From IMG/VR virus record IMGVR_UViG_3300042892_005961, positions 124,001 to 188,000 of that record: a stretch of 64,000 nt of DNA. One strand, written 5' to 3'. Numbering within the stretch: position 1 is the first letter of the stretch; each line of letters starts with the position of its first letter. The notes below the pieces were generated by a model, which ran no database searches, had not been told where the DNA came from, and saw nothing but the letters and a program-made list of their open reading frames with translations. Shown in pieces: positions 12,941-43,976 of this stretch. Both the position numbers and the translations under genes were made by a program.

Positions 12941-12957
12941 AAATTTAGTTTATAGGA

Positions 12958-12965: not shown

Positions 12966-12981
12966 ATTAAGATATTCGAAA

Positions 12982-22062: not shown

Positions 22063-24186
22063 TTAGAAGTCTAATTTTATTGCAAAAACCTGTGTTCCTG
22101 TTCTTTTAATTGGTGTAGATGTTTTAGCAATCACTAACGGTTCTTTTAATGAATCTAATAATGCGACTTCGGTAATATATTTATCGGTTGTAATTTCAGT
22201 TTGTGTTGTTCCCGTAAACCTTGTTGGGTTTTGTGATGTTAAGAATTGCGTAGATGGTAAGTTTATTAACATATTCATTTCTTCAATATCGGTTGCCCTA
22301 ACTAATCTAACACTACCAGGGAATGGTTGTTCGTCACCAAATTGTGGTTGTGTTGTTGATCCTGTTGTGTTCCACAAATAATCAGTTGTTACACCTGACA
22401 TATGGTCTTCTAAATCAAATGACGTTCCACCAGTGTAATCACTTTTTGTAATTGTAAACGTATAGTTAACCAAATTTATTGGGTCAATATATCCACTAGT
22501 ATATCCTGATATCTTTGATGTTATATCAATTTTTATCCATCCGTTTGGTGTTGGTGTTGTCCCTGTTTGTACTAATGCATAAAATTTGTCAGCAATAAAA
22601 CCATCTTTAATACCGCTTGGGGTAGTGTACATATTTGGAAATGCTCCTGTATTAAATTTAAATGTTAATTGTGAAGGGGTTCCGTTCCCTGTTATTTTAT
22701 TAAAATAATTGCATGGTAATGCATTTAATGTAGATCCACTAGTACTTGTATCTCCAAACATATATGTAAACCAAACAGTATCTCCTGTGGTTGGTAGTAA
22801 GGAATTAATCGCTGTTCCGTCACTTGGTACCGATCCCAATTTAGGTGACGGTAACGTATACCGTCTATTAGATCTATAATCTAACATTGCAACCAACTCT
22901 TGATCGTCGAATACAACTATTTTGTTATTAATAAAAACTTTACCTACTTTATTAGTTTGTTCATCTAACAAATATCTAAATTTTAATTCAAATCTAGAAC
23001 CTGTTGTTCCTGAAAATGGTTTAATGTAATAATCAACAGTATCCATTGTAAATTTTGCACCAAACGTATCGGTTGTATTTCTATGATAATGAATAAATGG
23101 GATATAAATTTCAAAATATTCTGTATCGCTAATTTCATCTCCGTCTTCATTTGTTACTATACTAATATCACAAGCATTTACACCCGATGGTGTACAATGA
23201 CTAATATAATCATCATATTTAAAAAATCTTTCAGGATCATTTGTAACATCTCCAAGTTCAGAATAATGTATAATTGCAATACACCTTTGTTCTGACGGTA
23301 AAACTTCAACTAATTCATCGAATGAATTTTTAAATGTAGTTCCTGTTATAGTTGTTCCTACAAAATTTGTAAATGTTTGTCCTGATTTTGTATATCCTAA
23401 TAATTGTTTTGTTGAAACATATTGATTACTATTATAACCACTTAAACTTTCATCTAAATCATTTGTTGGGTAATCTGCCCCGATTGGTTTGTCCGACCAT
23501 ACTGTATTTAATCTCCATGAATTAAGTTGTTGTGTATAATCAATTGGGTTAAATATGTCAGTTGTTGGTGATTCGTCGAAATATTCATTTAATACTACTT
23601 GTACATTACCTGTTAGTCCTGTTAAATTAGGGAGTTTACGATCTAGTGTTAATGTATTATCTGTTTTTGATACTACCTTATAGATCATACTATTTGTTTG
23701 TCCCGTAATTGTTGTACTTGAAAAACCATCTAAAACTACTGTTATAAAATCATTTGGTTTAAAATTCGTACCATCCACCACAACGAGACTTGTTGTTCCA
23801 CTTAGTTTACTATATGTTAATGGTTGTGGTGTTGTTTTTACTGTTGGTGCGGTTGAATACATAGATACAAATCCAGCACTACCCATTTCATTTCTTAAAG
23901 TTGTAGTTGAACTATTACTAATTGGTGTTCCGTATGTTGTTGAAGTTAAGACATCGCTACCTAAAGAATATGGATATTTTACCCCTGATTCGTTATCAAA
24001 TGGGGAAAATACTTTTTGTTGTCCTGTTGTTCCTGTTAAACCACTAAAAATTGTATTATAATCATATTCAGAATCTCCAATTTGAAAGAATTCAATATTG
24101 AAACTACCTTTGGCAATTGCCTTTCTACCCTCATTTGTTATTCGGGCTGTTAAATATTCTGCGTGATTACTGTTTAAAAAACTCAT
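22063..24186 (-). CDS. tail fibre/baseplate attachment protein (tail-collar-like termini)
   Basis: N-terminal ARITNEGRKAIAKG..FFQIGDSE and C-terminal ITEVALLD...IAKTSTPIKR bracket a large T/G/S-rich insert. Confidence 0.6.
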   Translation of the reverse strand: MSFLNSNHAEYLTARITNEGRKAIAKGSFNIEFFQIGDSEYDYNTIFSGLTGTTGQQKVFSPFDNESGVKYPYSLGSDVLTSTTYGTPISNSSTTTLRNEMGSAGFVSMYSTAPTVKTTPQPLTYSKLSGTTSLVVVDGTNFKPNDFITVVLDGFSSTTITGQTNSMIYKVVSKTDNTLTLDRKLPNLTGLTGNVQVVLNEYFDESPTTDIFNPIDYTQQLNSWRLNTVWSDKPIGADYPTNDLDESLSGYNSNQYVSTKQLLGYTKSGQTFTNFVGTTITGTTFKNSFDELVEVLPSEQRCIAIIHYSELGDVTNDPERFFKYDDYISHCTPSGVNACDISIVTNEDGDEISDTEYFEIYIPFIHYHRNTTDTFGAKFTMDTVDYYIKPFSGTTGSRFELKFRYLLDEQTNKVGKVFINNKIVVFDDQELVAMLDYRSNRRYTLPSPKLGSVPSDGTAINSLLPTTGDTVWFTYMFGDTSTSGSTLNALPCNYFNKITGNGTPSQLTFKFNTGAFPNMYTTPSGIKDGFIADKFYALVQTGTTPTPNGWIKIDITSKISGYTSGYIDPINLVNYTFTITKSDYTGGTSFDLEDHMSGVTTDYLWNTTGSTTQPQFGDEQPFPGSVRLVRATDIEEMNMLINLPSTQFLTSQNPTRFTGTTQTEITTDKYITEVALLDSLKEPLVIAKTSTPIKRTGTQVFAIKLDF

Positions 24187-24190
24187 ATGT

Positions 24191-24198
24191 TATAAATA
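24191..24198 (-). promoter_or_regulatory. candidate late promoter TATTTATA
   Basis: 4 nt upstream of ATG 24186. Confidence 0.5.
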
Positions 24199-24211
24199 TC
24201 TTTATTTTATT

Positions 24212-25522
24212 TTAATCACAAGGACAAGTTACGTTTGTAAATGATGAGAAGTATATTGCTGATGGATAGTTTGTTGCCATATAAGCACTATCTTTATTCG
24301 TGTCTATTCTTGAACAACATTCACTATTTATCGTCACAAAACTTAAATTACCCGCACTATAATCTACATAATATATTGCTGTTAAATCACATCTCTCATA
24401 CACATCATATGTTTGCGGTGTAGGAGTTGGTGGTAAAGGGGTTGAAGTTGGTGGTGCTCCTGAACAAGCTGTACAAGCTGTTTGTGCTGTTCCTGTTTGT
24501 GCCGAACCATCTCTCATAAATTCTCTTTCATCAGTACCATCAGAAACCCAAAATGTAGTGTTATTAGTCATATCACCATACACGCTACCATACATTGTGG
24601 AAGATAAACCTTTTACTTTTGTTAAATTACATAAAGACGTACCTACAACCGTAATATTAACATTACTATATTCACCACCAGTACATGCTGTTGGTCCGTT
24701 AACTAAACTAACATAACCACTAAACGTAGTTTCAAATGGAGTTGGTTGTGGTGTTGCAGTTGCCGGTAAAGGAGTTGGTGTTGTAGGACAACTACAAGGC
24801 GTTGATCCATAAGATATATCCGTAATACTTGCACCAACTGCGAATAATGAACCATTTTGAATACAATCATTTATTACTTGTGGTCCAATACCAAATGTTA
24901 AATCAATTGTCTCACCGCAACAATCAATATATCTAATATCACCTCCCGTATCAACCTCAAATTGTACAGATGTTACACAATTAGGTGTTGGGGTTGGGGT
25001 TACAGTTGCCGGTAATGGGGTTACAGTTGCCGGTAATGGTGTTACAGTTGCTGGTAATGGGGTTACTGTTGCCGGTAATGGGGTTACAGTTGCTGGTAAT
25101 GGGGTTACTGTTGGTGTATTTGTGGGAGTTGCCGTTGGTACAACTGTTGGTGTGGGAGTTGGTGTGGGAGTTGGTGTGGGAGTTGGTGTAGTCGGCATTC
25201 TTATAGTTAAATTATTATAATCAACACATTCCACACATATAACAGAGTCATCATCTTTTCCATTAAAATTTGATGGTATCACTCTAATTGTTTTTATTCC
25301 CTCGGGAACAACTACATATGTACCATTTAAACTTGATCTTGGAATATTGGAATATCCAACTAAAGGAAAATATTTTGACGAGTCAGATCCTGAAAGGGAT
25401 CCTGTACATAAGGATCCAGAATTGTTGGTACAATCCTCTAAACTTCCCGTACAGGCATACAAATCAACATTTAATATTGATACTCCTAAAGTAAATCCTG
25501 TTAATCGTATTGTATATGACAT
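24212..25522 (-). CDS. modular virion decoration/adhesin-like protein: N-domain, Pro/Thr stalks, three Cys-bounded modules
   Basis: PTPT and (TVTPLPA)5 linkers; two modules homologous to those in 33676..35808. Confidence 0.65.
   Translation of the reverse strand: MSYTIRLTGFTLGVSILNVDLYACTGSLEDCTNNSGSLCTGSLSGSDSSKYFPLVGYSNIPRSSLNGTYVVVPEGIKTIRVIPSNFNGKDDDSVICVECVDYNNLTIRMPTTPTPTPTPTPTPTPTVVPTATPTNTPTVTPLPATVTPLPATVTPLPATVTPLPATVTPLPATVTPTPTPNCVTSVQFEVDTGGDIRYIDCCGETIDLTFGIGPQVINDCIQNGSLFAVGASITDISYGSTPCSCPTTPTPLPATATPQPTPFETTFSGYVSLVNGPTACTGGEYSNVNITVVGTSLCNLTKVKGLSSTMYGSVYGDMTNNTTFWVSDGTDEREFMRDGSAQTGTAQTACTACSGAPPTSTPLPPTPTPQTYDVYERCDLTAIYYVDYSAGNLSFVTINSECCSRIDTNKDSAYMATNYPSAIYFSSFTNVTCPCD
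24486..24580. repeat. 95-bp perfect direct repeat, copy 1
   Basis: Identical to 34034..34128 by eye alignment. Confidence 0.85.
24997..25101. repeat. 21-bp tandem repeat x5 (TVTPLPA)
   Basis: gggttacagttgccggtaatg units with minor variants. Confidence 0.85.
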
Positions 25523-25527
25523 ATTTC

Positions 25528-25535
25528 TATAAATA
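25528..25535 (-). promoter_or_regulatory. candidate late promoter TATTTATA
   Basis: 5 nt upstream of ATG 25522. Confidence 0.5.
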
Positions 25536-25557
25536 GTATTATATAGAATTTAAACAA

Positions 25558-25583
25558 AAAACCCCTTAAAATAAAGGGGTTTT
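25558..25583 (-). terminator. intrinsic terminator
   Basis: aaaacccctt-aaaata-aaggggtttt 10-bp stem. Confidence 0.7.
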
Positions 25584-25605
25584 AATATTGTTTTGTTTTT
25601 AAATT

Positions 25606-26172
25606 TTATGTTGAGCAAACATTAATGTCCGTTACAAATCCACTTGCTGAAATTTGTCCTGTATATGTTGCAAATCCACTGTCGGTTCTATAATAAGCGT
25701 GATATTCATCCTCTCCACCATAACCACTTGTTAAACCAGCATCAGTAAAGAATTGTTCTACATTGGCTGCATTATTTGTTGCGGCAAATACTTCAGTTAA
25801 GAGACTTTGAGGTTCTCCACCACCACCAGTAATAGCAGCACAAGCCTGTCCAATATTCGATTGTGTAACTGATGGTCCTAATTGATATGAATATGATGTT
25901 ACTACAGGTGTTGGACTCGGAGTAGGTGTTGGGGTTGCTGCTGCCGGTGTCGCCAGCCACGGGGTTGTAGTTGTACAAGTACCTGTACTTGCAATTGTTC
26001 CCCCTGTTATAGCATCATTAATACCGGTAATTGTATGACCTGCTGTTAATTGGGCTTTTGTAATACCAGAGGCTAATTCTGATACAACGTTAGCATTTGT
26101 TGTTCCTGAAATATTAAACGGACCCGCTGCAGTTCCTGAGGATTCCGATTTTAATGTAAATGTTACTGTCAT
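25606..26172 (-). CDS. small modular virion decoration protein: N-domain, PT stalk, Cys-bounded tip
   Basis: Tip YQLGPS...NVEQFFTD...EYH...VC is homologous to the C-terminus of 26215..31266. Confidence 0.65.
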   Translation of the reverse strand: MTVTFTLKSESSGTAAGPFNISGTTNANVVSELASGITKAQLTAGHTITGINDAITGGTIASTGTCTTTTPWLATPAAATPTPTPSPTPVVTSYSYQLGPSVTQSNIGQACAAITGGGGEPQSLLTEVFAATNNAANVEQFFTDAGLTSGYGGEDEYHAYYRTDSGFATYTGQISASGFVTDINVCST

Positions 26173-26188
26173 ATTATTTGTTTCTTTT

Positions 26189-26196
26189 TATAAATA
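26189..26196 (-). promoter_or_regulatory. candidate late promoter TATTTATA
   Basis: 16 nt upstream of ATG 26172. Confidence 0.5.
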
Positions 26197-26214
26197 TCTG
26201 TTTATTTTGTTTTA

Positions 26215-29200
26215 TTAAGGTTGTTCAGCACAAACACTTTTGTCCGATACCTGACCAGTATATGAAATTCTTCCTGAATATGGTGATCCTCCACTATTTA
26301 AAGCGAATGAGTGATATTCATTTTCACCGGTATATACGTTTACTAAATTAGGATCTGTAAAGAATTGTTCTACATTAAATGGTTGATCTGCCGCCGCATA
26401 TGCTAGAATATAGAAATCCTGACCGTAATTTTGACAAGCCAAACTCGATGATGTATAAGATGGTCCTAATTGATAAGCATACGATGTTGCAGGTACAGGT
26501 GTGTCTGTAGGTACCGGTGTTGCCGTTGGTGGGAATGGTGTTGGTGTTGGTGATTCTGTTGGTACGTTTGTTGGTACTGCTGTTGGTACGTTTGTTGGTA
26601 CTGCTGTTGGTATTGCTGTTGGTACGTTTGTTGGTACGTTTGTTGGTACGTTTGTTGGTACGTTAGTTGGTACTGCTGTTGGTACGTTAGTTGGTACTGG
26701 TGTTGGTGTTGGTCCACAATATGTACAATCACTTGATATGTTACAAGTATTACCACATTCAACATCAGTTAATAAACCTGAATTAATAATTGGAGCTGTT
26801 CCACCTTGTAGACAATGCTGTCTACTTGTACCAGGTAATAAATTAATTGATTGTTCAGTTCCATTACAATTTGTTATTGTATAGTTTCCTGTTGTTCCAC
26901 CTTCATTATAAATTGTCCAACATATACAAGGTAATGGTGTCGAAGTTGGTATTGCTGTTGGTACGTTTGTAGGTACTGCTGTTGGTACGTTTGTTGGTAC
27001 TGCTGTTGGTATTGCTGTTGGTACGTTTGTTGGTACGTTTGTTGGTACGTTAGTTGGTATGTTAGTTGGTATGTTAGTTGGTATATTGGTTGGTTCTGGT
27101 GTATTAGTTGGGACCGCCGTTGGTACGTTAGTTGGTATGTTGGTTGGTATGTTGGTTGGTATATTGGTTGGTACTGCTGTCGGTACTGCTGTTGGTACGT
27201 TAGTTGGTAATGGTGTTGGTGTGCTGTAGATAACATCAACATCAACATTAAAGTTACAATCTGGCGTTGGAGTTGGAGTTGGTGTTGTAGTGTTAGTAGG
27301 TGTTGGGGTTGGTGTATTTGTCGCTGGTAATGGCGTAGGAGTTGGTGTATTTGTTGCGGATTCCGGTAATGGTGTTGGAGTATTTGTATTTGTTGGTGTA
27401 GGAGTTGGTGTACTATAGATAACATCAACATCAACATTAAAGTTACAATCTGGTGTTGGAGTTGCGGTATTTGTTGGTGTTGGAGTTGGGGTATTTGTTG
27501 GTGTTGGAGTTGGGGTATTAGTTGCTAATTCTGGTGTATTTGTATTTGTTGGTGTTGGGGTTGGTGTTGGTGTACCATATATAATGTCCACATTTATTTC
27601 AAAATCACAATTTGGTGTAGAAGTTGGTGTACTAGTTGGTGTTGGAGTATTTGTATTTGTTGGTGTAGGAGTTGGTGTACTATATACAACTAAAACATCA
27701 ACATTAAAGTTACAATCTGGTGTTGGTGTAGGTGTTGCAGTGTTAGTAGGTGTTGGAGTTGGGGTACTATAAAATATTTCTACGTCAACAGCAAACTCAC
27801 AATTTGGTGTGGCTGTTGGGGTTGGTGTTGGGGTTGGTGTACTAGTAACAACTAAAACATCAACTAAGAAATTACAATTTGGTGTAGGTGATGGAGTAGG
27901 TGTTGGTGTACTAGTAACAACTAAAACATCAACATTAAAATTACAATCTGGTGTTGGGGTTGGTGTTGGGGTTGGTGTACTAGTAACAACTAAAACATCA
28001 ACATTAAAATTACAATCTGGTGTTGGGGTTGGTGTTGGTGTATTTGTTGCAGGTGATGCCGTTACTGTTGGTGTTGGGGTGGAAGGTAATGGTGTTGCAG
28101 TTGCTGGTAATGGTGTAGCTGTTGGTGTGGCTGTTGGTGTTGGTGTGTTTGTTGGAGTTGGTGTTGGTCCTGGCTCATATATCGCTAATCCTCCACTAAA
28201 TCTACAATCTTTCACATCATTTTGACCAATTGATACATATCCATAATCTAAATAATTATTTACTGTACAATCATTTGGACCGTATTTGTAAGATGTGAAT
28301 TTAATTTTTTCACGTCCTTCATTATCTATGAAAAATTCATATGATATTATTTTTTGTTTTGTTGTTCCTGTAATCGATGAATTACCAATTTCGGTTCCGT
28401 ATTGTGTGTTTTTACCTTCTCCATCTATAGTTGATCCAGAATAGGTGTTAATATATGTAATTGTATTTTGTATCGCCCTTTTCCACAGTATTTTTAATTG
28501 TTGGTCTATTTCACTATAAACCGAAAGGTTATTAGTTGTACCTCCACTATATAATTTAACACTAATACCATTAGTTGTAACGGTATTATCGTTATTAAAT
28601 GTTAATGTTGTTCCAGTTAATGAAGTTGCTCCACTGATTAAAACATATGTACATCCTGTAACATTTGTTGTTGTGTTTAATGCAGAAGCATTTTCAGGGT
28701 CAGTCATACCTGAATAAACTATACCGTCAATTTCAAATATTGGATAAAGTTTAACATAACCATCGTGTTTTGTTTCCCCATCTTCATCAATTTCAATAGA
28801 AAAACCAAGATCATCGTCAGCCTGTTGTATTAAATAATCAAAATAACTTGTAAATCCTGTTGGTATTTCTAAATCAAAATTAATGTGGTCTTCCGTTTCT
28901 GTAGGTTGACATCCATATCTATATTGATATTTTGATCTACCAAAAATATTATTTGAAATTAAATTACCTCCCGTCCATAAAGTTGTTGCAGGAATAATTT
29001 GATCGATAACACTTGTCCAATAAGGACTCATTTTTTCAATAAACAAATTAATGTCAGGAAATGTGTATGCTTTGTTAGGTGAAAAATCTCTAGTAATATA
29101 ATCTTGATAGATGTCCTCTAATGTAATATAATTCTTCTTATATTTTATTAAATTAGAATTTTTAATTTGTTGATGTATCATTAAATCGACATACTCAGCG

Positions 29201-31266
29201 AATGTTACTCCTGTTTGTGGTGTTAAACTATTTGTACCGAATGTTGTACCTGTTGGACCAAAGTCTCTAGATTTACGATATATGTCATAATCAACCGCTT
29301 GTGCTGATGATAAATAAACTTCAATATTTTTTCTATTTAATAATAAACCAGAATTATCATTAAGATTTTCTGTTTGATTATTATCAATAATATTTTTTAA
29401 TTTATATCCTGAGTCTAATCCTGGCAATTTTCTATAAACGTCAAAATAATCTTCACCATAGGTATATGCACTATTTTTAGTAACAATATTTTTAGTTCTT
29501 CCTGTTACCGTTGAATTATCGATATCAATCACTAATGGTGATTTATGATCTGTAGTATTATCATACCAACCAGATCCTTTTTGGAAAAAATATTCTGTTG
29601 ATCCCGTAATTCCTTTAGGTAATAACGTATCTCCATTAACGGGATAATTTTCAGAATTAAATGTTGTTGTACCTGTAGTTATACCAGTATAATATCTATA
29701 TGGAAGATATGTTACACCATTAATAGTTCCACCTGTTGGTAAGAATATTCCTGTTTTGTAAGTTTTAGTTCCCGATATAACATCATAAATGTCACCTTTT
29801 AAATCAAATGATTTAGGTAAAGATATTACCTTGTAAACATATTGATTAATTTTAATCATTGGTTCAGGAGCACCTAAAAATCTTAAAAAAAATTCTAAAG
29901 ATTGTCTTGTACCTTTTGATTTATAAATGTAAGCCAAGTTAACTAACAACCTTCGATAAAATTCATATTCGGCGTCTATTAAAGACGTTCCCGATACTAA
30001 TCCAGAATATTGTTGTGATGTCTTAGTGTATAATAATTCATCTAAACCTTTCTCATCAATTAAGTTAATTGTATCTAACCCTAAAGTATTTGCCAAGTTT
30101 TTTAACAATACATCGGGTACGTTATTAATACCGTCATAACTTACATTTCTCATGTAAGCAATATTATCAATATATTTTTTTACACTATCAAAACTTTGTC
30201 CATATAATTGAAATAATGATTCGGCCTTTTTATCGGGACTATCAAATTCAAACAATTGAGGTGATGTTAAAAACCTAACAAATAAGTTAGACTTATAATC
30301 ATCAATTTCATCTGCTATATTACTTAAATTTGTTAAATAACTATCATATTCTAAACCTGTAATTTTAATGTTCCAATCTTCCTTATCGGATAACGGCCAA
30401 CTATAATTTACTGAAATTAATTCGGTTTTTGTTTCGTCAAAACTATCTCTTGGTACCTTAAAACTTGAAGTATATTTTGGAAAAGTGTCTCTGTTTAATA
30501 AACTTTCCTCTAAATCATCTAAACCTTTAAAGAACTCTTCAACAACACCATCATTTGGTTTAATTAATATATTTTCAGAAAACCCCGTTAAGTTATCAAA
30601 TGGTTTACCACTTACCTTTAATGAAATTATATTATCACTATTAGGTTCAATATATGAAATTACATCATATGTTTTTCCACTTATTGAAATTAAATAGTTT
30701 TTAAAAGAAGTATAAAAATCTCTGTTTTTATTAATTGAAGGTAATATGGTATTACTTTTCGGTGTAACCATAACAATCGAAAATGGATTGTATAGTTTAC
30801 TGTACTCAACTTTAAATTGAGTGGTGTTACTTATATTATCATATGTAATATTATTAGCGGTAAAATTCGTTACTTTAATTAAACTATTAGAATCAATTAA
30901 AATAGCCGCAGGAAAATTATTAATTATATTAGTTGTCGCAACACCTAGTCTACTTTTTAATGATCCAAATAAAGATTTAGCAGCATCATTTTTAGAACCT
31001 TTAAATTTTATTTCTTTATTTTTACTTGTAGTACCACTCGTAGTTGTACTTGAAGTTTGTCCTTTTAAATCATCTAATGTTAAAAAATTAGAAAACGGAT
31101 TTGTTTTAAAATTCTTTGTATCTCTTTGTATTACCTCACTATCTAACGCAAAGTTCGTATTAGTCAATTGACCGGTACCCGTGGTAATTTGATTACCGAC
31201 TAGATTGTCACTGAATGTATCGGCACCACTCGCAGCTTGACTTGGAATTTTACGTAATTTTGCCAT
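26215..31266 (-). CDS. large baseplate wedge-like protein (P2 gpI/T4 gp7-like core) with ~600-aa Pro/Thr-rich C-terminal stalk and tip modules
   Basis: [14 protein letters not shown]...[18 protein letters not shown] motif; repeats and tip from about aa 1035. Confidence 0.65.
26558..26700. repeat. 12-bp tandem repeat block ([12 protein letters not shown])
   Basis: gttggtacgttt-type units. Confidence 0.85.
26945..27210. repeat. 12-bp tandem repeat block (PTNV/PTNI/PTAV)
   Basis: gttggtacgttt / gttggtatgtta units. Confidence 0.85.
27222..28017. repeat. eight dispersed CxFxVxVxxx(Y/T)(S/G) units separated by PT linkers
   Basis: [17 protein letters not shown] and variants in the translation. 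Confidence 0.85.
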
Positions 31267-32177
31267 TAGATATTAGTGATTGTATCAAAGTTTAAATTTT
31301 CATCAATATCATTACGGTTTTCTCTAACCTCATATAGAGTTTCGTTAAAGTTGTCTTTAATTTCAAATAAGTTATATTGTTTATAGATGTTATTATCTTT
31401 ATCGTAAATTGTGTAAATACCTGGAGTAACCGCCTTAGTTTGATTACCGTAAAGAGCATTTGCAAGTGTTGACGCATCATGTTCAACCATATCAATTTCG
31501 ATAGTTGTTGGGTTCATATATGTATTTGATAAAATAACCATTTGACCTGGACTACCAATAAATGGAACGGTATTTGGTTTGTTTGACGGTGCAGACGATG
31601 GTGTAATTGTTAAAAACATAAAGTTTGTTGCACCTTCACTATATTGATATCTTACTGACTTTTGTGTTGAACTATTTAGATTCGCCGTAACAGGAGTACA
31701 ATAAAAAGAAGACGTAACAATTTTATAGAAATTTGGTGTTTTTTGTTTGTTATTAGAATTTATATATTCAATCCTATAACCAACTAAACCTTGTGGTGTA
31801 AATTTATTTCTATCTTCAGACTTAACATTTGATAAATCCAAGATTAGTCCTCTTACTGATGGTAATGATGCTAAAACACCACAATCCATAATTGTTGTTC
31901 TAATTTGTTTTGGTCTGATATGAAGTGTGTATATTCCTAAATCAGGAAAATCTGTTGCATTTAATTTAAGATTATATAAACCTCCTAAGATTTCCACACC
32001 ACTTTCTCCACCGGTATTTCCATTATGTAAAATAGGTGTTAATACCTGATTTGGGGTTAATTTCTTTAATACTGTTGGAGTTGTTGAGATCCGATTGGGT
32101 GCATAATGATAAAGTATTTCTACATCATCGGGTGATACATCCGCCGGTCTAACTATTCCATATGATCCTACTGCCAT
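31266..32177 (-). CDS. putative baseplate/virion structural protein
   Basis: 303-aa ORF in the baseplate block, TAATG-coupled to the large wedge-like gene. Confidence 0.6.
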
Positions 32178-32187
32178 ATTCTTTTAT

Positions 32188-32195
32188 TATAAATA
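32188..32195 (-). promoter_or_regulatory. candidate late promoter TATTTATA
   Basis: 10 nt upstream of ATG 32177. Confidence 0.5.
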
Positions 32196-32201
32196 TAAAT
32201 C

Positions 32202-33674
32202 TTATTGTTTTTTAACTTTAAAAAATCCATTTCCATAAACATCTAACTCACTCATGTTGTCAATTTCACCCAATCTTAGATTAACCTCCATGACACCTTG
32301 ACGTCCTCTTTCCACAAAAATGTCAGAATATACTGTTGGGTCATCGATAAAACCTAAGAAATGTTCGTTTCTTGTTAACATATGATTTATAACATACTCG
32401 GTAGCAAATTCTGTTGTATTACCACTTGTTGTTAAATATGGTACAGTATTTATTGTGTTTCCCGATATTTCATATGTATAACCACTAGTTGGTCCAAACC
32501 TATAATTTGGAACACTTCCCGTTATTTGTGTAAATCCATCTTCTCTATCCATATAATATAAATCATCTACCGTATATCCTGTATACTTTGTTCCATCAGA
32601 TAATGATCCTGAATCAACACCATAAGGTGTGGTTTCACCATATCTCTTAAATTCACCAATTCTGCTTTGACCTATTGCCATAAATTTAAATGTCTTTGTG
32701 GGTGTTGCAGTATATCCTGTGTTAGAATATTCATAATCATTTAAATAATTTAAAGATCCTGTTATTTGTGTATATGGTATTGTAAACCCGCTAAATGTCC
32801 CTAATACATTAACATTATCAGTAATAGAACCTGTATTAAAAATGGTTATGTTTTTAGTTATTTTTTGATTTGACCATGGAGAGTTTAAAAAAATTGATAT
32901 ATCAAAACTACTTATATTTGATCCCGAATATGTTTCTTTATATGAACCTGTATATGACGATGTATATGGTGTATAATTAAATGACGCGGTTGGAAAATTT
33001 GAATATAAAACTCCTCCATTTGAATCTAATGAACCTGTAATTGATAGTGATCCTGTTATATTTTGTTTAACTCCCCAATCTATTGTAAAATCTTGATCAA
33101 CAATTTTTCTTAATTTATCAGGATTTACAGTACTATAAATCGTAACATGTGATCCTGATATTCTATATGTAAAATTAACTAATTGTTCTACTTGTTCCAT
33201 ATTTCCATCGAATGAAACCATAACACCCATTTCATCCACATCCGATTCTAAATAAATTGGTATCTCATATTCATAACCCGTAAATCCCGTGTATAAATTC
33301 CAATTATCTCCATCCCATTTATAATATTTCCCCTTTGTATTGTTAATTGCAACTTGTTCAACCTCTTTCCAATATACACTACCAGATGGTATGTTATTTA
33401 AATTACTACCTGTTAATGATTGATACGTTTTACCACTATAAAATAAAACAACGCTTCCTGTGTATGTAATATCAGGATACCATTTTATGTCACGTACCAA
33501 ATGTAAACTACCTGTCTCATTTGAAGACGGTACCATACCATCTATTGGGACTGACGCACTATACCAAGATTTCCAATCGTTTATTTCTGTATCAAACCAA
33601 AAAGTACCAGTTTCTGAATGTAAATTAACATCAGGTATCTGTCTTTTTAATATTGTATATTCGTTTTTTTTCAT
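32202..33674 (-). CDS. virion structural protein with a CBM5/12-like module
   Basis: WYPDITYTGSVVLFYSGKTYQSLTGSNLNNIPSGSVYW; T/G/S/Y-rich. Confidence 0.55.
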   Translation of the reverse strand: MKKNEYTILKRQIPDVNLHSETGTFWFDTEINDWKSWYSASVPIDGMVPSSNETGSLHLVRDIKWYPDITYTGSVVLFYSGKTYQSLTGSNLNNIPSGSVYWKEVEQVAINNTKGKYYKWDGDNWNLYTGFTGYEYEIPIYLESDVDEMGVMVSFDGNMEQVEQLVNFTYRISGSHVTIYSTVNPDKLRKIVDQDFTIDWGVKQNITGSLSITGSLDSNGGVLYSNFPTASFNYTPYTSSYTGSYKETYSGSNISSFDISIFLNSPWSNQKITKNITIFNTGSITDNVNVLGTFSGFTIPYTQITGSLNYLNDYEYSNTGYTATPTKTFKFMAIGQSRIGEFKRYGETTPYGVDSGSLSDGTKYTGYTVDDLYYMDREDGFTQITGSVPNYRFGPTSGYTYEISGNTINTVPYLTTSGNTTEFATEYVINHMLTRNEHFLGFIDDPTVYSDIFVERGRQGVMEVNLRLGEIDNMSELDVYGNGFFKVKKQ

Positions 33675-33675
33675 T

Positions 33676-35808
33676 TTAGCACTGTTCTGATGATAATCCT
33701 GTTATTTGTCCTGTACTATTATTAATATCCCACGTTTCTCCATTAATTTGAACATATTCGTATCCTATCAAAGCATTAGGGAATGTATCAACATATACAA
33801 AGCATCCTGTTGTAAAATCAAATGGTCCACAATCAGAATAGAATGTTCTATTATTTGATGCGTCATTACAAACTCCACTAAATGTATTTCCTCTACCACA
33901 ACCTGTATATGTTGTTAAAGGTATTGTAGTTGCTGTTGGAGTAGGCGTTGGTGTTGAACCGCCAGGAGTTGCTGTTGGCGTTGCGGTTGGAGTTGCAGTT
34001 GGCACACCTGAACAAGAGGTACATGCTGTTTGAGCTGTTCCTGTTTGTGCCGAACCATCTCTCATAAATTCTCTTTCATCAGTACCATCAGAAACCCAAA
34101 ATGTAGTGTTATTAGTCATATCACCATATACGTTACCATATATTGAAGAAGATAAACCTAATACTTTAGTTAGGTTACATAATGAAGTACCTTGAACTGT
34201 AACAGTCACCGCCTCATATTCACCACCACTACAAGCTGATGGACCATTAACTAAACTCACATAACCACTAAATGTAGTTTGGAATGGTGTTGGAGTTGGT
34301 GGTAAAGGAGTTGGTGTTGCAGTTGGTGGTAAAGGAGTTGGTGTCGCCGTTGGTGGTAAAGGAGTTGATGTTGGTGTTGGTGTTGCGGTTGATGGAAGAC
34401 ATGACGTTTCACCATAAAACACAGATGAAATTGACGCGATTACTCCTGATAATGAATTATTTTGAATACAATCATTAATTACTTGTGGTCCAATACCAAA
34501 TGTCTCCGTAACTTCACTACCCTCACAATTAAAATATCTAACAGTTCCACCAAAATCAACTTCAAAACTTACTGACGTTACACAAGGACTTTCTGTAGGT
34601 GTTGGGGTTATTGTAGGAATTACCGTAGCCACTGGTGTAGGTGTTGAAGTTGGGAAAGGTGTTGACGTTGGTCTAGGTGTCGCCGTAACTCCACCAATAG
34701 GTGTCGGAGTTGGGGTTGATACCGGTAATAATACTCCTCCTCCTTTTTCGTAGAATGTTATACTATCAGTCGTTGTATAACCTGTACCTATTCTATCTAA
34801 TTTTGTTGTCCCCGTATATCTATATATTTGATATGTTCTTTCATAGTGATCAAAATCAATTTGATAATACATATCTTTTTCTTCCGTTATATTATAACTT
34901 GTTGTTTGACCTGAATTTATAAAATCTAATATCTCACCTCTATCCGCATTGAAAAATTTTGCTGTCATGAAAAACGTATTCATTCCGTGATAAAATGGTG
35001 ATTTATTATCATTTGGGTTTTTTATAATTTCATATGTTAAATTTGGATATTGAAATGTTTGTCCCGTCCAACCAATTAATGTGGTACCTGTAGTACCTGT
35101 AGTTATTGGTATGTTTACTTGTGTTATATCGTTATTTTCATTTGTAAATAAAATAGTTTGTTCCGTTGTTGCGGTAAAACTATACATATCTAATGTTGTA
35201 GTTCCACTTAAATTAGTATCTGTTAAAACACTCTCATTATCAAACCAAAACAAATACATATTTTCTTTGTTTCGATAATTTGAACCTGTAAAAACAGGTA
35301 CAAATATATTATACCCATAGTTACTACCTGTATGAAAATATTTTTCACCTAAGGGTAATGCTAAATTTTTAGAATTTATTAATCTTCTATTTTGTCTTGT
35401 CGGTGGCTCACATGTTAAAACATAATTTGTTATACTACCGGGTGTTTTATAAAACTCTAATCTAAAGAAACTTTCAGTTGATTGTTTTGTCATCAATTGA
35501 TTTTCTTGTGTTGATATACCAACAGGATTATAATCTAAAACATAATTTGGTGTGTCTCCACTTGTTGCAAAATAAAATTGAAACCATATGTCAGTTTGTG
35601 TAAAATTAGGTGGGTAAGTGTTTCCCGTTACAATATATGGTTTATGAATGTATCTAACTGTTTCATAATTTTTAGATGGATTAATAATATCTTTTAAAAC
35701 TTCATCTTCAAAATCGGCAAGATTATCCTGCCAACCCAAATCGGTTCTAAAACTTTGTTCACTATTAACTACAATATTTAAATTGTTACTATTTTTTAAA
35801 ATTTCCAT
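33676..35808 (-). CDS. virion structural protein with C-terminal PT stalks and three Cys-bounded modules
   Basis: Two modules shared with 24212..25522; terminal module ends in C. Confidence 0.65.
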   Translation of the reverse strand: MEILKNSNNLNIVVNSEQSFRTDLGWQDNLADFEDEVLKDIINPSKNYETVRYIHKPYIVTGNTYPPNFTQTDIWFQFYFATSGDTPNYVLDYNPVGISTQENQLMTKQSTESFFRLEFYKTPGSITNYVLTCEPPTRQNRRLINSKNLALPLGEKYFHTGSNYGYNIFVPVFTGSNYRNKENMYLFWFDNESVLTDTNLSGTTTLDMYSFTATTEQTILFTNENNDITQVNIPITTGTTGTTLIGWTGQTFQYPNLTYEIIKNPNDNKSPFYHGMNTFFMTAKFFNADRGEILDFINSGQTTSYNITEEKDMYYQIDFDHYERTYQIYRYTGTTKLDRIGTGYTTTDSITFYEKGGGVLLPVSTPTPTPIGGVTATPRPTSTPFPTSTPTPVATVIPTITPTPTESPCVTSVSFEVDFGGTVRYFNCEGSEVTETFGIGPQVINDCIQNNSLSGVIASISSVFYGETSCLPSTATPTPTSTPLPPTATPTPLPPTATPTPLPPTPTPFQTTFSGYVSLVNGPSACSGGEYEAVTVTVQGTSLCNLTKVLGLSSSIYGNVYGDMTNNTTFWVSDGTDEREFMRDGSAQTGTAQTACTSCSGVPTATPTATPTATPGGSTPTPTPTATTIPLTTYTGCGRGNTFSGVCNDASNNRTFYSDCGPFDFTTGCFVYVDTFPNALIGYEYVQINGETWDINNSTGQITGLSSEQC
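34034..34128. repeat. 95-bp perfect direct repeat, copy 2
   Basis: Identical to 24486..24580. Confidence 0.85.
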
Positions 35809-37976
35809 TAACAGTTAGTTTTATTTTTATAATTATTAAATCCACCAAATAGATCATTTTTATTTTTATATGATTTTTCATTTCTTAAATAAAAATTAAT
35901 ATCATTTACAACATAGTGTGTATTATTCATATATGGAAATCTTGTTCCATTACCATCTTGATCCACAAATCCATGATCATATAAATCTCTCCATTTCCAT
36001 AATTTATCATCATTATCGTAAATTGCATTTTCGGGTAAATTGATTAAATCGTTTGTTTTTGAACTTTCGATATATGGAGATAGTTCTCTTAATTTAACTC
36101 TGTAGTGTGGTTGGTAATAATACCCGACTGTATTTGATGGTGTTGCTCCTTGATAAAAACTATCTTGATCTTGTGAGTGATAAAATAATCTATTACTTCC
36201 ACCTACTGTTGTTCCAGAAAAAATTGTTTTGTGTGAAAATTTATGAAACGCCTCACTAATAATTCTTTCTTTTAATTCTTTTCTATTGTATTCAACGAAG
36301 GCACCTGTAAGACCTGTGGTTCCTACCGGTATAGTTGTTCCGCCAGTAAATGTTACACCCGTATAATTGTAGGTACTACCTAATATTGTATTTGTTTTAC
36401 CACTGAACGTTTGTGTTAATCCTGTCATTACCTTTTCAACCGATGTTGTTCCACTAAATTGATTATCCAACCAATTATCATGAAAATTAAATTTAAATCC
36501 TACTTTTGGTGGGTAATCAAATAATCCGTTACCGTTTTTAAAAATTATACTTACATAAACTTCTGTTGGTGTGTAACCCAAATTATTGGTTATTCCGGTT
36601 AATGAGAATGTTTCTTTAAAATCAAATAATACAGATTCTTGTCGATTTCTTTCTACTAATATATCATTTTCTTGTAATGGATTTTCGAATAATATTTTTC
36701 TTTCGTCTTCAAAAATTGATGATTCAAAACCAACTTTATCCATAATATATTGTTGATCTCCTGTTAATGTTTTATGTTTATGAACATAATATTGTGACGT
36801 TGTTCCTGAAATATTTTTAATATCTAAACATCTTTTACCTAACACAACTGAGCTTAATATTGTTCCCGACGAAAATTCATTTTTTAATATGTTGATTACA
36901 TAATTTTCTGAATTATAAGTTTGATTACCAACACTATCGATATAGTAAATTCTATATTTTTCGGTGTCGGAAGTAATTGGTATTGTATAATATTGTCTAT
37001 TAGATGTTTGTTGCCAGAAACTTGTTGATCCCGTAATCGGTGGTATATTATTTAAATTAGAATTTACTAAAGATTTATAAGTTGCTCCCGAATAAAAAAC
37101 TAAATTATTAACATCATAAGTTTCAGTTGAATTCCAATTAGTAACTAATTTCCAATTTGTATTTCCTGTTAGTGGTGGTATGTTATTTACATTACTATTT
37201 ATTTTTGATGTATATATTTTATCAGAATAATGTATAATATTATCTTTACTATAGGTAACTCCTGAAACCCAATTATGAGAAGTATATGTACCTCCCGATA
37301 GAATAATATATTCCCCTTGTGATATTCCGTGTTCAACTGGTGATGTTAATATATAATAATTTGGATCTGTTGTACTGTCTACTCTAAATGGTATTCCGTT
37401 ACCAGCAACAAAGTTAAAATTAGTTTCATCTGATAAAGTATAGTTCATAGTGAATCCACTATCTTGTCCGTTCACATAACTTAAATATAAATTCCAATTT
37501 TTATAAGGAGCGTCGATTGATGTTGTGATGGTATGACCGGTGTATCTTCCAAATGGTGTTCCGTCAAATAAATCAATTTTTGGTATTACATTTGTTGTTC
37601 CTAATGTAGATCCATATGAAGGGGTTGTCCTTTCTCGTAAAACATCATTTCTTAAAAATGCAAATTCATTATATGGTACAAATCCTAAATCATTTCCCGT
37701 TCCGTCACCACATAAATAAAGGTTTCTTAATAGTGGAATATAATCAGTAAAACCATTATACATGTTTCTAAAAACCATTTTTAATTTACCATATATTTTA
37801 TAATTAAAACTTTGGTTTCTTTCATCATCAAATAATTCGGTTAGATTTAACATTATATTTCTATCACCTTCTCTCATCAATGTCTCATCATTATCTAATT
37901 TAACATTAAGATTAAGATCCTGTTCATCTGCCTTAAAATATCTTTTACTCGGTAATAAAATTTGTTTCTTTTTCAT
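35808..37976 (-). CDS. virion structural protein with two tandem CBM5/12-like modules
   Basis: WVSGVTYSKDNIIHYSDKIY..SNVNNIPP..W and WNSTETYDVNNLVFYSGATY..SNLNNIPP..W. Confidence 0.55.
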   Translation of the reverse strand: MKKKQILLPSKRYFKADEQDLNLNVKLDNDETLMREGDRNIMLNLTELFDDERNQSFNYKIYGKLKMVFRNMYNGFTDYIPLLRNLYLCGDGTGNDLGFVPYNEFAFLRNDVLRERTTPSYGSTLGTTNVIPKIDLFDGTPFGRYTGHTITTSIDAPYKNWNLYLSYVNGQDSGFTMNYTLSDETNFNFVAGNGIPFRVDSTTDPNYYILTSPVEHGISQGEYIILSGGTYTSHNWVSGVTYSKDNIIHYSDKIYTSKINSNVNNIPPLTGNTNWKLVTNWNSTETYDVNNLVFYSGATYKSLVNSNLNNIPPITGSTSFWQQTSNRQYYTIPITSDTEKYRIYYIDSVGNQTYNSENYVINILKNEFSSGTILSSVVLGKRCLDIKNISGTTSQYYVHKHKTLTGDQQYIMDKVGFESSIFEDERKILFENPLQENDILVERNRQESVLFDFKETFSLTGITNNLGYTPTEVYVSIIFKNGNGLFDYPPKVGFKFNFHDNWLDNQFSGTTSVEKVMTGLTQTFSGKTNTILGSTYNYTGVTFTGGTTIPVGTTGLTGAFVEYNRKELKERIISEAFHKFSHKTIFSGTTVGGSNRLFYHSQDQDSFYQGATPSNTVGYYYQPHYRVKLRELSPYIESSKTNDLINLPENAIYDNDDKLWKWRDLYDHGFVDQDGNGTRFPYMNNTHYVVNDINFYLRNEKSYKNKNDLFGGFNNYKNKTNC

Positions 37977-41662: not shown

Positions 41663-43492
41663 TTAAAATGTAGCCGTTCCTAATGTTTTAACCCTAACTT
41701 TAATATCTTTATTTGGGAATCTAATTTGGAAGATTTGATTTGACTTCATAAAGATCATATTATCGGATTGATTTATCAATCTAGTGTTTTGATCTGTTGT
41801 TTGTGATGGCTCCGCAGATGAATACTCACCTCCTATTTTACTGTAAACTCTTGTCTCAATTACATTTATCACACCTGATACGCTACCTACGATTTTGTTT
41901 AAAGCACCGATAAACAAAGGATCACCCATTTTACGTTTTTCTATTGCAAAATGTTCAATTGTATCCTGAATTACCGTTTGTATGATATCCGTCTGATTTG
42001 CGTTTTTATCTATGTTTAAATCAATTTCTAACCCCATATCGATGACTTCACCACTTACAATATCCAAATAGTCATTAATCATTTTATATTCCGTAAGATA
42101 GGTTAAAATGTTCGATTTTAGTGTATAAGAAACAGTATCAGTTAAATTACCTTGGTCGTCATATGATAATAATTTAATTCTAATCTTATTATCTTCCTCC
42201 ATAACATTAACCTTAGCTGGTGCTCCGTATGTTGATGGCATCGTTTCAATTAATGATTTATAATCATTTAATGTAACCGCCCTATTTTGTGCTGCAAAGT
42301 TATATGAAACCATATTACGAATTTCTTCGATTGTTGGTTGGTCCGCACCACCTACTGCAGGTGTTATGTTATTAACTCTAAGTGATTGTACCACACCAGT
42401 ATTCTTTGCTGGCACAGGTCCTGAAACTATAAATTCAACATCATCTACGTTTGTAATTACATTCACCCCTAAGTTACTATCTTTACCACCACCCACACGA
42501 TATTGTACAAATAATGTTGTATTAATTTTTGGTGTAGTTCCTAATGATAGATTATTTAAATAACTCGCCAAATTAACTTTCAATTGTCCTGTCATATAGT
42601 TGTCCAAATTGTCTAATGGATTAACTGTACCCGAACCAAATGTTAATGAAAAATAACCTTCAGGTGTATATTCTGTTATGAATTTATTATTAACAGGTAA
42701 AAACGTTCCTGCGGTAAAATTATTTGTATCCGATACAGACGTTGGGTCTGGCACAAATACTTTATCTTGAATTAATGATTTAACCTCATACCATTTGTTT
42801 GAGGTATTAGAAAATTCATTTGATGTTGGATTACTTGTAAAAGTTGTACCGTCCTTATGAATAACAGATGTTACTCCTAATACGTTTTGTTCGGGTAAGT
42901 ATAATTTTAAGAAAGGTTTTTGATCCGCTTGGTTTATAACTCTTCTATAAATTTTTGTTATACCATTTACAACAGGTTCTCTTTTTGTAATTGTATAAGA
43001 TATTAATCTATTATTTACATCAAAATTTGGTATCTTTAATCTATTAGGTTCTCCTTTTTTATTAAATGGAACAGAAAAATCAATATCATCAATTGTTTCA
43101 AAAACTTGACCTCCTCCTGAAACTTGAGCACCACTCTTTAATATACCCAAATATCTAACATCTTCTTTATCTCCTCTAACATCCACAGTAATTGAAAAAT
43201 CACATAATGCAACTGATGGTCTAACTCCTGGTAATCTAATACCATATGTTTTTGCAATATGATATAATGATTGTCTTTGTTGTGCAAAATCCAACATAGT
43301 TTCCTGCCAAACTCTATCAATGTGAAAGTGTAAGTTATCCGCAACCGCGGCATTAATATCTAATAACACCGAATAAATCGATGCGTCGTTAAAATTTTTA
43401 ACTAAATCAGGATAGTAATTTTTAGTTAATGTTACTAATTCATTTCTTAATCCCTGAAAATCTCTTGTTGCGTATGATATCTGTTTACTCAT
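41663..43492 (-). CDS. baseplate wedge subunit, T4 gp6 / baseplate J-like
   Basis: YATRDFQGLRNEL, YRVGGGKDSN, GGAD..TIEEIR...AQNRAVTLNDY. Confidence 0.85.
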   Translation of the reverse strand: MSKQISYATRDFQGLRNELVTLTKNYYPDLVKNFNDASIYSVLLDINAAVADNLHFHIDRVWQETMLDFAQQRQSLYHIAKTYGIRLPGVRPSVALCDFSITVDVRGDKEDVRYLGILKSGAQVSGGGQVFETIDDIDFSVPFNKKGEPNRLKIPNFDVNNRLISYTITKREPVVNGITKIYRRVINQADQKPFLKLYLPEQNVLGVTSVIHKDGTTFTSNPTSNEFSNTSNKWYEVKSLIQDKVFVPDPTSVSDTNNFTAGTFLPVNNKFITEYTPEGYFSLTFGSGTVNPLDNLDNYMTGQLKVNLASYLNNLSLGTTPKINTTLFVQYRVGGGKDSNLGVNVITNVDDVEFIVSGPVPAKNTGVVQSLRVNNITPAVGGADQPTIEEIRNMVSYNFAAQNRAVTLNDYKSLIETMPSTYGAPAKVNVMEEDNKIRIKLLSYDDQGNLTDTVSYTLKSNILTYLTEYKMINDYLDIVSGEVIDMGLEIDLNIDKNANQTDIIQTVIQDTIEHFAIEKRKMGDPLFIGALNKIVGSVSGVINVIETRVYSKIGGEYSSAEPSQTTDQNTRLINQSDNMIFMKSNQIFQIRFPNKDIKVRVKTLGTATF

Positions 43493-43493
43493 C

Positions 43494-43946
43494 TTATATG
43501 TTTAAAATTATAAAGTCGGAAGTTGAAAATGACCCGTTATTAACTGTATATTCTATTTTAACTACCGCCGTATATGGTTTTGTCGATTCATCAGAAACCC
43601 TAAATAATCTTTCATCTTCATCTTGTGCAATACTTCTTTGTCGATTTGGATCATCTTCGGCGGATGTTATAGATATATTTGTAATATCTAAGTTTGGTAT
43701 GAATTTTTTAACTCCTTCTCTGATTTCTTCTTCAATTAAATTATATGTAATTGCGTCATTTTGATCAAAAATATATTGATATATTCTTGTTCCAAAATCA
43801 GGTAAGTAATATCTACTACCTTTTCTTGTTAAAATAAGGTGTATAAGATTGGCTCTAATCTCCTTTTCAGGGATTTCAGTCATATTAAGATAATCTCCTT
43901 TAGGACTATCTCTAAATGGATAATCAATACCGTACGTTACTGCCAT
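43494..43946 (-). CDS. baseplate wedge subunit, T4 gp25 / GPW-like
   Basis: NLIHLILTRKGSRYYLPDFGT..YIFD; ATG start 43946. Confidence 0.85.
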   Translation of the reverse strand: MAVTYGIDYPFRDSPKGDYLNMTEIPEKEIRANLIHLILTRKGSRYYLPDFGTRIYQYIFDQNDAITYNLIEEEIREGVKKFIPNLDITNISITSAEDDPNRQRSIAQDEDERLFRVSDESTKPYTAVVKIEYTVNNGSFSTSDFIILNI

Positions 43947-43976
43947 ATTCAATAAATATAGATAAACCTAAAATGG

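Follow-up and report, generated by a model that had tools for sequence, protein, structure and literature searches.

The window analysed here comprises 64 kb (bases 124001-188000) of one 211,168-bp contig (about 30% GC) of the IMG/VR virus record IMGVR_UViG_3300042892_005961. Positions are those of the window unless stated otherwise. Four open reading frames (ORFs), all on the minus strand, were confirmed at 24212-25522, 25606-26172, 26215-31266 and 33676-35808; they encode proteins of 436, 188, 1683 and 710 amino acids, termed p436, p188, p1683 and p710. A previous sequence-only reading had described them as ending in proline/threonine-rich (PT) linkers that carry small Cys-bounded modules, and had proposed that such tips are mixed and matched between genes. 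This was borne out in related loci, where constant carriers bear varying tips and the same modules were found on non-homologous carriers at up to 92% identity. We consider it very probable that the module shuffling is real.

Cut at the PT linkers, p710 consists of a 359-residue core followed by modules A, B and F37, p436 of an N-terminal domain followed by A, B and F64, p1683 of a 1030-residue core, a long stalk and modules D and C, and p188 of an N-terminal domain and C. The sharing of A and B, in the same order, by p436 (residues 117-369) and p710 (residues 362-622) was confirmed at 62% identity over 280 alignment columns (E 3e-101), and that of module C by p188 (residues 18-187) and p1683 (residues 1525-1680) at 37% identity over 170 columns (E 5e-23).

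The carrier core of p710 (residues 1-359; 34732..35808) is conserved in over 100 IMG/VR loci, with identities of 44-100%. It is followed by PT linker 1 (residues 360-408; 34585..34731), delimited by segmentation and a tandem repeat, and by module A (residues 409-470; 34399..34584), a member of family F8 with Cys at both ends. PT linker 2 (residues 471-508; 34285..34398) contains a 27-nt tandem repeat at 34285-34382 and leads to module B (residues 509-599; 34012..34284; family F6), which has four near-invariant Cys residues including a C-terminal CxxC. PT linker 3 (residues 600-631; 33916..34011) was assigned by segmentation. The terminal module F37 (residues 632-710; 33679..33915) also forms the tip in L060, on a p188 orthologue, and in L117, on a further p710 orthologue.

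In p1683 the core (residues 1-1030; 28177..31266) has 16 orthologues with a mean column identity of 68%. The stalk (26929..28176), in which PT linkers alternate with eight 12-residue Cys mini-modules, precedes the Cys-rich module D (residues 1447-1517; 26716..26928; family F24), which was also found on p188 orthologues and on p1055, a PT-linked protein encoded elsewhere on the contig. The PT linker before C (residues 1518-1595; 26482..26715) contains 12/24/36-nt tandem repeats and shares a 31-nt exact run with p1055. Module C (residues 1596-1683; 26218..26481; family F10), with one Cys near each end, is 90% identical in amino acids to the C copy of p1055 and about 45% identical to that of p188.

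The conserved N-terminal domain of p188 (residues 1-74; 25951..26172) was found in ten orthologues at 50-92% identity with six different tips; a PT linker (residues 75-93; 25894..25950) joins it to module C (residues 94-188; 25609..25893), assigned by alignment to the C family. The N-terminal domain of p436 (residues 1-109; 25196..25522) has eight orthologues with differing tips. Its long PT linker (residues 110-181; 24980..25195) is made up of a 21-nt repeat in 5.7 copies and a 12-nt repeat, and reaches 10-50 times the contig depth in lake metagenomes. It is followed by modules A (residues 182-245; 24788..24979), B (residues 263-353; 24464..24736), with 87% nucleotide identity to B of p1055, and F64 (residues 372-436; 24215..24409), which recurs after B, A or D in metagenomic proteins.

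The term 'Cys-bounded' describes the modules of the window but does not hold throughout the relatives, where Cys residues lie near both ends in only 19% of 219 tip modules; at least two Cys residues are present in 57% of them. The Cys content is 2.5% in tips and 1.1% in large pieces, an enrichment that suggests stabilization by disulfides outside the cell.

For the survey of relatives, all ORFs of 157 related IMG/VR loci were extracted and cut at PT linkers, and the resulting 641 pieces were clustered; architectures were counted over complete, distinct proteins only. Module content is not fixed: the carriers are conserved and syntenic, and their tips differ from one relative to the next. Distinct tip architectures numbered 26 among 42 proteins for p710, 16 among 16 for p1683, six among nine for p188 and four among four for p436. 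Orthologues of p710 range from 250 to 902 residues, many of them being the core alone (250-349 residues), and PT-linked tips are also present on some orthologues of the neighbouring p490 and p1205. Module A was found on p710, p436 and p1683 carriers, B on these three and on p1055, C and D on p188, p1683 and p1055, F37 on p710 and p188, F15, F32 and F34 on p710 and p436, and F33 on p1683 and p490. For 23 of 67 module copies the nearest homologue sits on a different carrier type, at up to 92% identity and often on another contig.

The two small genes had been likened to insertable cassettes. This part of the proposal was not retained: because the N-terminal domains of p188 and p436 are conserved and their position downstream of p1683 is kept in relatives, only the tips changing, they are not mobile cassettes. 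Both proteins are better read as small adaptors that carry variable tips.

Beyond the related loci, 73 relatives of the A-B-F64 region were found among 5.8 billion proteins, all of them unnamed and metagenomic, with the additional combinations A-A-A-F37, A-D-D, B-F37, B-F64 and A-C. A profile of module B matched only 90 cluster representatives in 1.84 billion proteins; PT linkers were present in 69 of the 87 with sequence examined, and at least three of the 90 (P0078, P0127 and P0151) are partial repeat matches rather than true B modules. A cellular origin of module B was considered but found no support: P0078, the only named match, from a Bacteroidota metagenome-assembled genome (MAG), contains a tenfold 40-residue propeller-type repeat that covers profile positions 43-76 only, and P0127 and P0151 were discarded as cellular relatives for the same kind of partial match. 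On a Bacteroidota MAG contig (L160, gene 10001-14803), a cellular protein of 1600 residues lies among neighbours of the type IX secretion system type (Por_Secre_tail); its ten 40-residue repeats resemble the FW-x-S-D-G...R...G segment of module B, a match judged to be partial, propeller-blade-like and probably convergent.

The same architecture was found in four further ORFs of the contig outside the window (1055, 130, 1242 and 276/342 residues). p1055 consists entirely of linker-borne modules, D, B and C among them, p130 is nearly all linker and p1242 is another beads-on-a-string protein. The all-beads protein p1055 is reshuffled too, since P0097 (metagenomic, 1076 residues), an orthologue of p1055, keeps the N-terminus and carries another bead string that includes four B-like copies. 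Both p1055 and p130 lie inside a tail-fibre cluster (L158; G000:C1:101001-121000), between its three collagen-triple-helix-repeat proteins (1163, 1116 and 1980 residues) and a 203-residue protein matching the C-terminal tip of long-tail-fibre distal subunits (gp37-tip-like). The ORF after p1242, at the contig end (L159:14017-15045, minus strand; G000:C1:210017-211045), encodes a PT linker and then a Laminin_G_3 domain (concanavalin-A-like lectin; PF13385, E 1.6e-22), and also matches a 'virion structural protein' PHROG. This is the only tip in the genome with a recognized binding fold.

Where close relatives diverge, the homology mostly breaks off inside or beside a PT linker, or else where the gene ends. 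The reference and L006 share 96.5% DNA identity in the gp6-gp7 region, and the p710 tips are replaced: nucleotide identity is 90.6% through the core and module A, stops at 34295 (about residue 504) in PT linker 2, four residues before B, and is back at the stop codon (33678), B and F37 having been swapped for another module. Between p188 and its counterpart in L004, homology ends at 25964, five residues before the linker, and is back at the stop codon, with C swapped for D. Close pairs, defined by carriers at least 80% identical and tips that differ, gave 46 homology ends, of which 26 lie in or within ten residues of a linker and eight at the protein end. Over all pairs, 45-73% of the homology ends are near linkers, which make up 16-28% of the protein length; these pair counts are not phylogenetically independent and are descriptive.

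Linker DNA has a GC content of 48%, compared with 31% for the genome, consists of tandem repeats with periods of 12-36 nt and uses almost exclusively ACA and CCA codons. The Pfam PT repeat (PF04886) threshold was not reached, with p1683 scoring 20.8 bits against a cut-off of 26.2 (E 2.8e-4); the composition is clearly Pro/Thr-rich. Positions 24001-28000 have a GC content of 36-39% and a GC skew of +0.36, compared with 28-33% and a negative skew in the remainder of the window. This local anomaly follows from the ACA/CCA-rich linker DNA on the minus strand and does not indicate foreign origin. Exact runs reach 31 nt between linkers of different genes and 81 nt within one gene, and a whole block of linker and module is common to p1683 (residues 1519-1684) and p1055 (residues 884-1056) at 83% nucleotide identity. 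In four lake runs the linker DNA was present at 10-50 times the depth of neighbouring DNA, and contigs stop there with heterogeneous continuations.

The mini-module of the p1683 stalk is a 12-residue unit, D/N-C-N-F-N-V-D-V-x-V-V-T/Y-S (Cys plus an amphipathic strand), present in eight copies among PT stretches; higher-order tandem repeats of 69/87/162 nt are superimposed, and the copy number varies from 0 to 10 among p1683 orthologues. ORFs of 99-187 residues overlap the p1683 PT repeats in other frames or on the other strand (26466-26765, minus; 26501-26884, plus; 26874-27437, minus; 27809-28225, plus) and translate to low-complexity strings of the QQTYQQ or VGTGVG type. They are almost certainly by-products of the repeats and not genes.

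The explanation that we propose is as follows. The conserved N-terminal carrier would presumably be built into the tail. The C-terminal part of each protein is a series of flexible Pro/Thr linkers bearing small modules (60-100 residues) that are rich in beta structure and, for the most part, in Cys. Held out from the virion by long flexible tethers, these modules would bind polysaccharide or protein ligands of the host surface or elsewhere, and their Cys residues would form disulfides after lysis, in oxic water. Tips would be swapped by recombination in the repetitive linker-coding DNA, which offers exact inter-gene matches of 20-31 nt and whose products tolerate in-frame changes in length; a UvsX-like recombinase encoded in the window is in keeping with this. 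The outcome would be a combinatorial variation of adsorption specificity without a diversity-generating retroelement (DGR). Taken as a whole, with virion display and binding included, we regard this explanation as more likely than not.

Several points weigh against it. In addition to the lack of independence of the pair counts, 12 of the 46 close-pair homology ends lie away from linkers. Paralogous copies within the genome are 73-87% identical in DNA, so that exchange inside this genome was not very recent. Breakpoints in linkers would equally fit random recombination if only products joined in unstructured segments survived selection. Neither T4 gp7-gp12 nor any solved baseplate protein showed detectable homology to the carrier cores. 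For modules A, B and F64 no annotated relative was found, by sequence or by structure (PDB, AFDB, BFVD and Atlas), the best scores being under the noise of the tools, and for this reason the word 'adhesin' rests on analogy. The sequence-only reading had dispensed with a DGR, and no reverse transcriptase (RT; PF00078) was matched on the 211-kb contig; because the IMG/VR virus record is about 63% complete (CheckV), the absence is provisional.

One alternative concerns the junctions. Selection alone might place them at linkers, if illegitimate or short-homology recombination struck anywhere and the survivors were those joined in length-tolerant PT segments. The ends outside linkers speak for this, as do the inter-gene exact matches, mostly of 8-18 nt with few of 23-31 nt, and the ACA/CCA bias, which a genome of 31% GC would use anyway. 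However, linker DNA resembles itself much more closely than random coding DNA does (between genes, 65-83% identity over stretches of 120-520 nt), the blocks shared by p1683 and p1055 take in a whole linker together with its module, and the variation in stalk repeat number is expected from unequal homologous exchange. Selection as the sole cause is possible but doubtful; the data fit homology-driven exchange in linkers and exchange merely tolerated there equally. A bolder extension, in which PT-coding DNA consists of evolved recombination 'sockets', is put forward tentatively. The sockets would give the clade a shared pool of disulfide-stabilized modules of new fold families, usable in any order on several tail carriers and exchanged among the paralogous genes of a genome as well as among co-infecting phages. 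This would create a combinatorial, tethered multi-ligand adsorption apparatus, a recombination-based alternative to DGRs, with the tether length set and the chains cross-linked by the periodic Cys/beta-strand mini-module in the stalk of p1683.

Using AlphaFold2, modules A, B and F64 of p436 were modelled with confidence (predicted local distance difference test, pLDDT, about 75-88) and separated by disordered linkers, but no annotated fold was matched. Module A is predicted as a six-stranded all-beta domain (pLDDT about 80), B as a beta-rich domain with two short helices (pLDDT about 75-88) and F64 as beta with one helix (pLDDT about 80). Composite alignments (full-length p710 with module fragments, and A-linker-B with divergent B fragments) smeared the fragments and were discarded; alignments of natural homologues and high-identity fragments were used instead, and for p710 the core only. 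Folds were searched in PDB (Foldseek, VIA-wide), AFDB clusters, BFVD and the ESM Atlas. The best AFDB match was a PKD-domain protein aligned as a domain string (E 4e-4, TM 0.2), the best VIA matches were PilZ-type small barrels for B (Z 6.4) and jelly-roll-like domains for A (Z 3.8), and BFVD returned uncharacterized proteins of uncultured phages. PilZ-like, PKD-like or jelly-roll identities are not claimed for such sub-threshold or unannotated matches.

No Pfam match was obtained for modules A, B, C, D, F37 and F64 or for ten larger tip families from relatives, and module C has no annotated sequence relative and no structural neighbour in the ESM Atlas. The carriers p1205, p722, p710, p490, p303 and p1683 gave no sequence match in PHROG, Pfam, NCBIfam or PDB, as single sequences or as profiles. 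The p710 core was modelled with a pLDDT of 65 overall and 80-90 for residues 200-359; residues 202-276 repeatedly matched myophage baseplate wedge chains (XM1, Bas63, Mu and P1) at Z 3.0-4.4, which is below noise. The ESM model of the p188 N-terminal domain suggests a beta-sandwich, with no confident match. The predicted folds neither confirm nor contradict an adhesin role.

Location on the virion is argued from the gene neighbourhood. A gp25-like baseplate wedge protein is encoded at 43494..43952 on the minus strand (PF04965, E 7e-11, 42.2 bits against a cut-off of 27.2; phrog_261, 1.4e-16), and a gp6-like (gp6/J-like) baseplate wedge protein adjoins it on the same strand at 41663..43492 (phrog_219, 2.7e-21; phrog_6, 1.2e-17), both as members of a T4-type contractile-tail block. 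The order on this single strand is gp25-gp6-p1205-p722-p710-p490-p303-p1683-p188-p436-p707. The gp6-like protein is 27.6% identical to the annotated wedge protein of Flavobacterium phage immuto, and in that phage the position equivalent to the block after gp6 leads to annotated tail fibre and spike genes. Synteny with gp25/gp6 and the tail-fibre genes, the correspondence with immuto and a shared upstream TATTTATA box, described below, make the PT proteins candidate virion components. A binding role of the tips appears plausible from the Laminin_G_3 tip, the absence of catalytic domains and signal peptides, the tip turnover and the analogy to grafted modules (PMC4742702, PMC7533335, PMC10684548).

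Under a different assignment of roles, receptor recognition would fall to the collagen-repeat long fibres. The tips would then be an accessory decoration comparable to the Ig-like domains found on T4 Hoc and on other structural proteins of phages; by weak general adhesion or stabilization they would help virions to stay attached to particles, to mucus-like exopolymers or to cell surfaces in general. Many p710 orthologues are the core only, so that tips are dispensable for this carrier. A conventional set of fibres, among them a gp37-tip-like protein, is encoded separately in the genome, and the modules, small beta domains present several to a protein on long floppy tethers, give a weak alignment as strings of PKD-like domains. 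On the other hand, tip turnover between near-identical genomes (gp6-gp7 at 96.5%) looks like arms-race diversification, typical of specific receptor binding, and the module sequences give no detectable sign of an Ig, PKD or fn3 domain. We rate accessory decoration as rather unlikely.

PT linkers (family PF04886) are best known from secreted glycoside hydrolases. This background, together with the lack of homology linking the carriers to known structural proteins, would favour the view that the PT-linked proteins are not virion parts but are made in or exported from the infected cell, for instance for surface modification, exclusion or polysaccharide degradation. Against it stand the N-termini of p188 and p436, which on inspection are not signal-peptide-like, and a Cys in p436 orthologues whose position is unlike that of a lipobox. 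No enzyme domain was found in any tip tested, the genes lie inside the gp25/gp6 block and the tail-fibre cluster with the TATTTATA box in common, and the Laminin_G_3-tipped member matches a virion structural PHROG. A role away from the virion is therefore improbable.

Assembly artefact as the source of the architecture variety, short-read assemblers having joined genes or strains through PT-coding DNA that is repetitive, present at 10-50 times the flanking depth and a point at which Logan contigs break, is scarcely credible, because identical full-length forms of at least eight p710 and two p1683 variants were recovered from 2-5 independent metagenomes each (the 710-, 601- and 639-residue p710 forms in three each, the 515-residue form in five and the 1787-residue p1683 form in four), and, moreover, inter-gene exact repeats of at most 31 nt are below the usual final assembly k-mers, the reading frame and whole modules are kept in every variant and the flanking genes are syntenic throughout.

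A conserved anchor, variable distal modules and recombination in receptor-binding proteins (RBPs) are a well known principle. The exchange of phage RBPs, as in T-even gp37/gp38 mosaics and Klebsiella-phage RBPs, resembles the present case in its conserved N-terminal anchor and replaceable C-terminal binding parts, in recombination between related and unrelated phages and in the focus of diversification on host-interaction proteins; 'ongoing shuffling of protein fragments' has been described (PMC10684548). The classical cases swap rigid trimeric fibre or spike segments at conserved junction motifs, whereas here each protein has several small autonomous modules, their order along the long disordered Pro/Thr tethers varies, and they hop between non-homologous carriers. 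The 'evolved' Dit, Tal and BppA proteins of lactococcal and streptococcal siphophages (PMC4742702, PMC7533335, PMC7291167) are similar in that conserved baseplate proteins have acquired additional binding modules, the set of which differs from one close relative to the next. Their modules have recognized carbohydrate-binding module (CBM) or BppA folds, sit in loops or rigid extensions without PT tethers and belong to siphophages of Gram-positive hosts; the present ones are mostly orphan families with putative binding in a T4-type myovirus lineage.

The architecture CBM-PT linker-catalytic domain of bacterial cellulases, xylanases and cellulosome components, in which Pro/Thr linkers likewise join independently folding modules, provides the classic example of domain shuffling. 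Its bearers are enzymes that cells secrete, whereas the proteins described here have no catalytic domain or signal peptide, occur in a phage tail gene context and carry modules unrelated to catalogued CBM families, except for the one Laminin_G_3 tip. Ig-like decoration domains such as those of T4 Hoc are small beta-sandwich add-ons at the ends of structural proteins, dispensable for assembly and thought to be weakly adhesive, as in the bacteriophage-adherence-to-mucus idea. The modules share with them the position as small add-ons at protein ends, but have no Ig, fn3 or PKD sequence signature, are on tail-region rather than capsid proteins, have PT tethers and are extensively reshuffled. With the DGR of Bordetella phage BPP-1, which acts on Mtd-type tips, the presumed purpose is the same, rapid variation of a distal binding surface; BPP-1 uses targeted mutagenesis of a C-type-lectin fold, in contrast to whole-module swapping here, with no RT on the contig.

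What is unusual here is the presence of several autonomous orphan modules on long Pro/Thr tethers, their movement between carriers and the scale of this within one environmental clade. A literature search returned no description of the PT-tethered module format in phages; the moraphage paper (PMC12619734) is silent on the format and probably deals with another lineage. Modular RBP exchange is the accepted route of phage host change, and the known examples mostly trade rigid pieces of fibres or spikes. In the present clade one carrier alone has as many as 26 architectures, modules move between unrelated carriers, and the phages are common enough to be tracked through lake time series of 2020 to 2025. 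The speed of tip turnover, the dependence of exchange on homology and the number of ligands addressable per virion thereby become testable in nature. The orphan Cys-rich modules of about 60-100 residues appear in the models to fold on their own. Should they prove to bind defined glycans or surface proteins, they would provide new binding scaffolds, and the carrier-PT-tip format would be a template for engineered display on phage tails in laboratory strains.

The two small genes had each been assigned a late box of their own and a terminator between them. An intrinsic-terminator-like hairpin was indeed located between p188 and p436 (25558..25583, minus strand), with a 10-bp stem (four GC pairs) followed by a T-run. 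A box precedes both genes, at 26189..26196 for p188 (16 nt upstream of the ATG) and at 25528..25535 for p436 (5 nt upstream of the ATG), both on the minus strand, but it is not a T4 late box, as the coding strand reads TATTTATA and not T4's TATAAATA. The former is the reverse complement of the latter. Over the whole contig, 29 of 217 genes have TATTTATA in the 60 nt that precede their start codon (actual distances 3-46 nt), compared with about 1.9 expected. These genes include p436, p188, p303, p707, two PT proteins outside the window and many structural-region genes; window boxes are found, among others, at 5653, 24191, 25528, 26189, 32188 and 63753. A T4 late promoter reading was rejected, since the total TATAAATA count is at chance (16, with 18.6 expected) and the positionally enriched coding-strand motif is TATTTATA. 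The box is probably a late-type promoter element of this lineage.

The window also encodes UvsX-like, gp32-like and gp46-type (SbcC-like) proteins, which with the gp25-like and gp6-like wedge proteins make up its T4-type functions, as well as a DnaB-type helicase and a ribonucleotide reductase; a family-B DNA polymerase is encoded on the contig outside the window. No tRNAs were found in the window. The contig is labelled 'provirus' in IMG/VR, yet it has the genes of a lytic T4-type phage. By gp6 the closest deposited phages, at only about 27% identity, are Flavobacterium phage immuto, Microcystis phage Mel-JY01 and a 484-kb uncultured phage. The source is a member of a clade of large uncultivated freshwater T4-type myoviruses, because the sequence was found again in lake-water metagenomes from 2020 to 2025 and contigs of IMG/VR relatives reach 310-335 kb. 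Membership of the 'moraphage' lineage (PMC12619734) is unlikely because PhoH, lysyl-tRNA ligase and family-A DNA polymerase (PF02562, PF00152 and PF00476) are absent from the contig, an absence that is provisional as the contig is incomplete. Hints at a Bacteroidota host from the ESM Atlas (SprB, Por_Secre_tail) were too weak and were not used.

Two very large ORFs lie elsewhere on the minus strand, of 1936 residues (52852-58662) and 1588 residues (58972-63738). The former has no Pfam or PHROG match and the latter has a TATTTATA box upstream. Among the neighbouring carriers, p722 (35808-37976, minus strand) contains two copies of a Y-S-x-x-x-Y-x-S-x-x-x-S-N-x-N-N-I-P...W motif at residues of about 228-314, and p490 (32202-33674, minus strand) contains one copy at residues of about 75-105. 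The motif gives a weak CBM_5_12 match under the Pfam cut-off (E 0.0012) and may be a carbohydrate-binding-type repeat.

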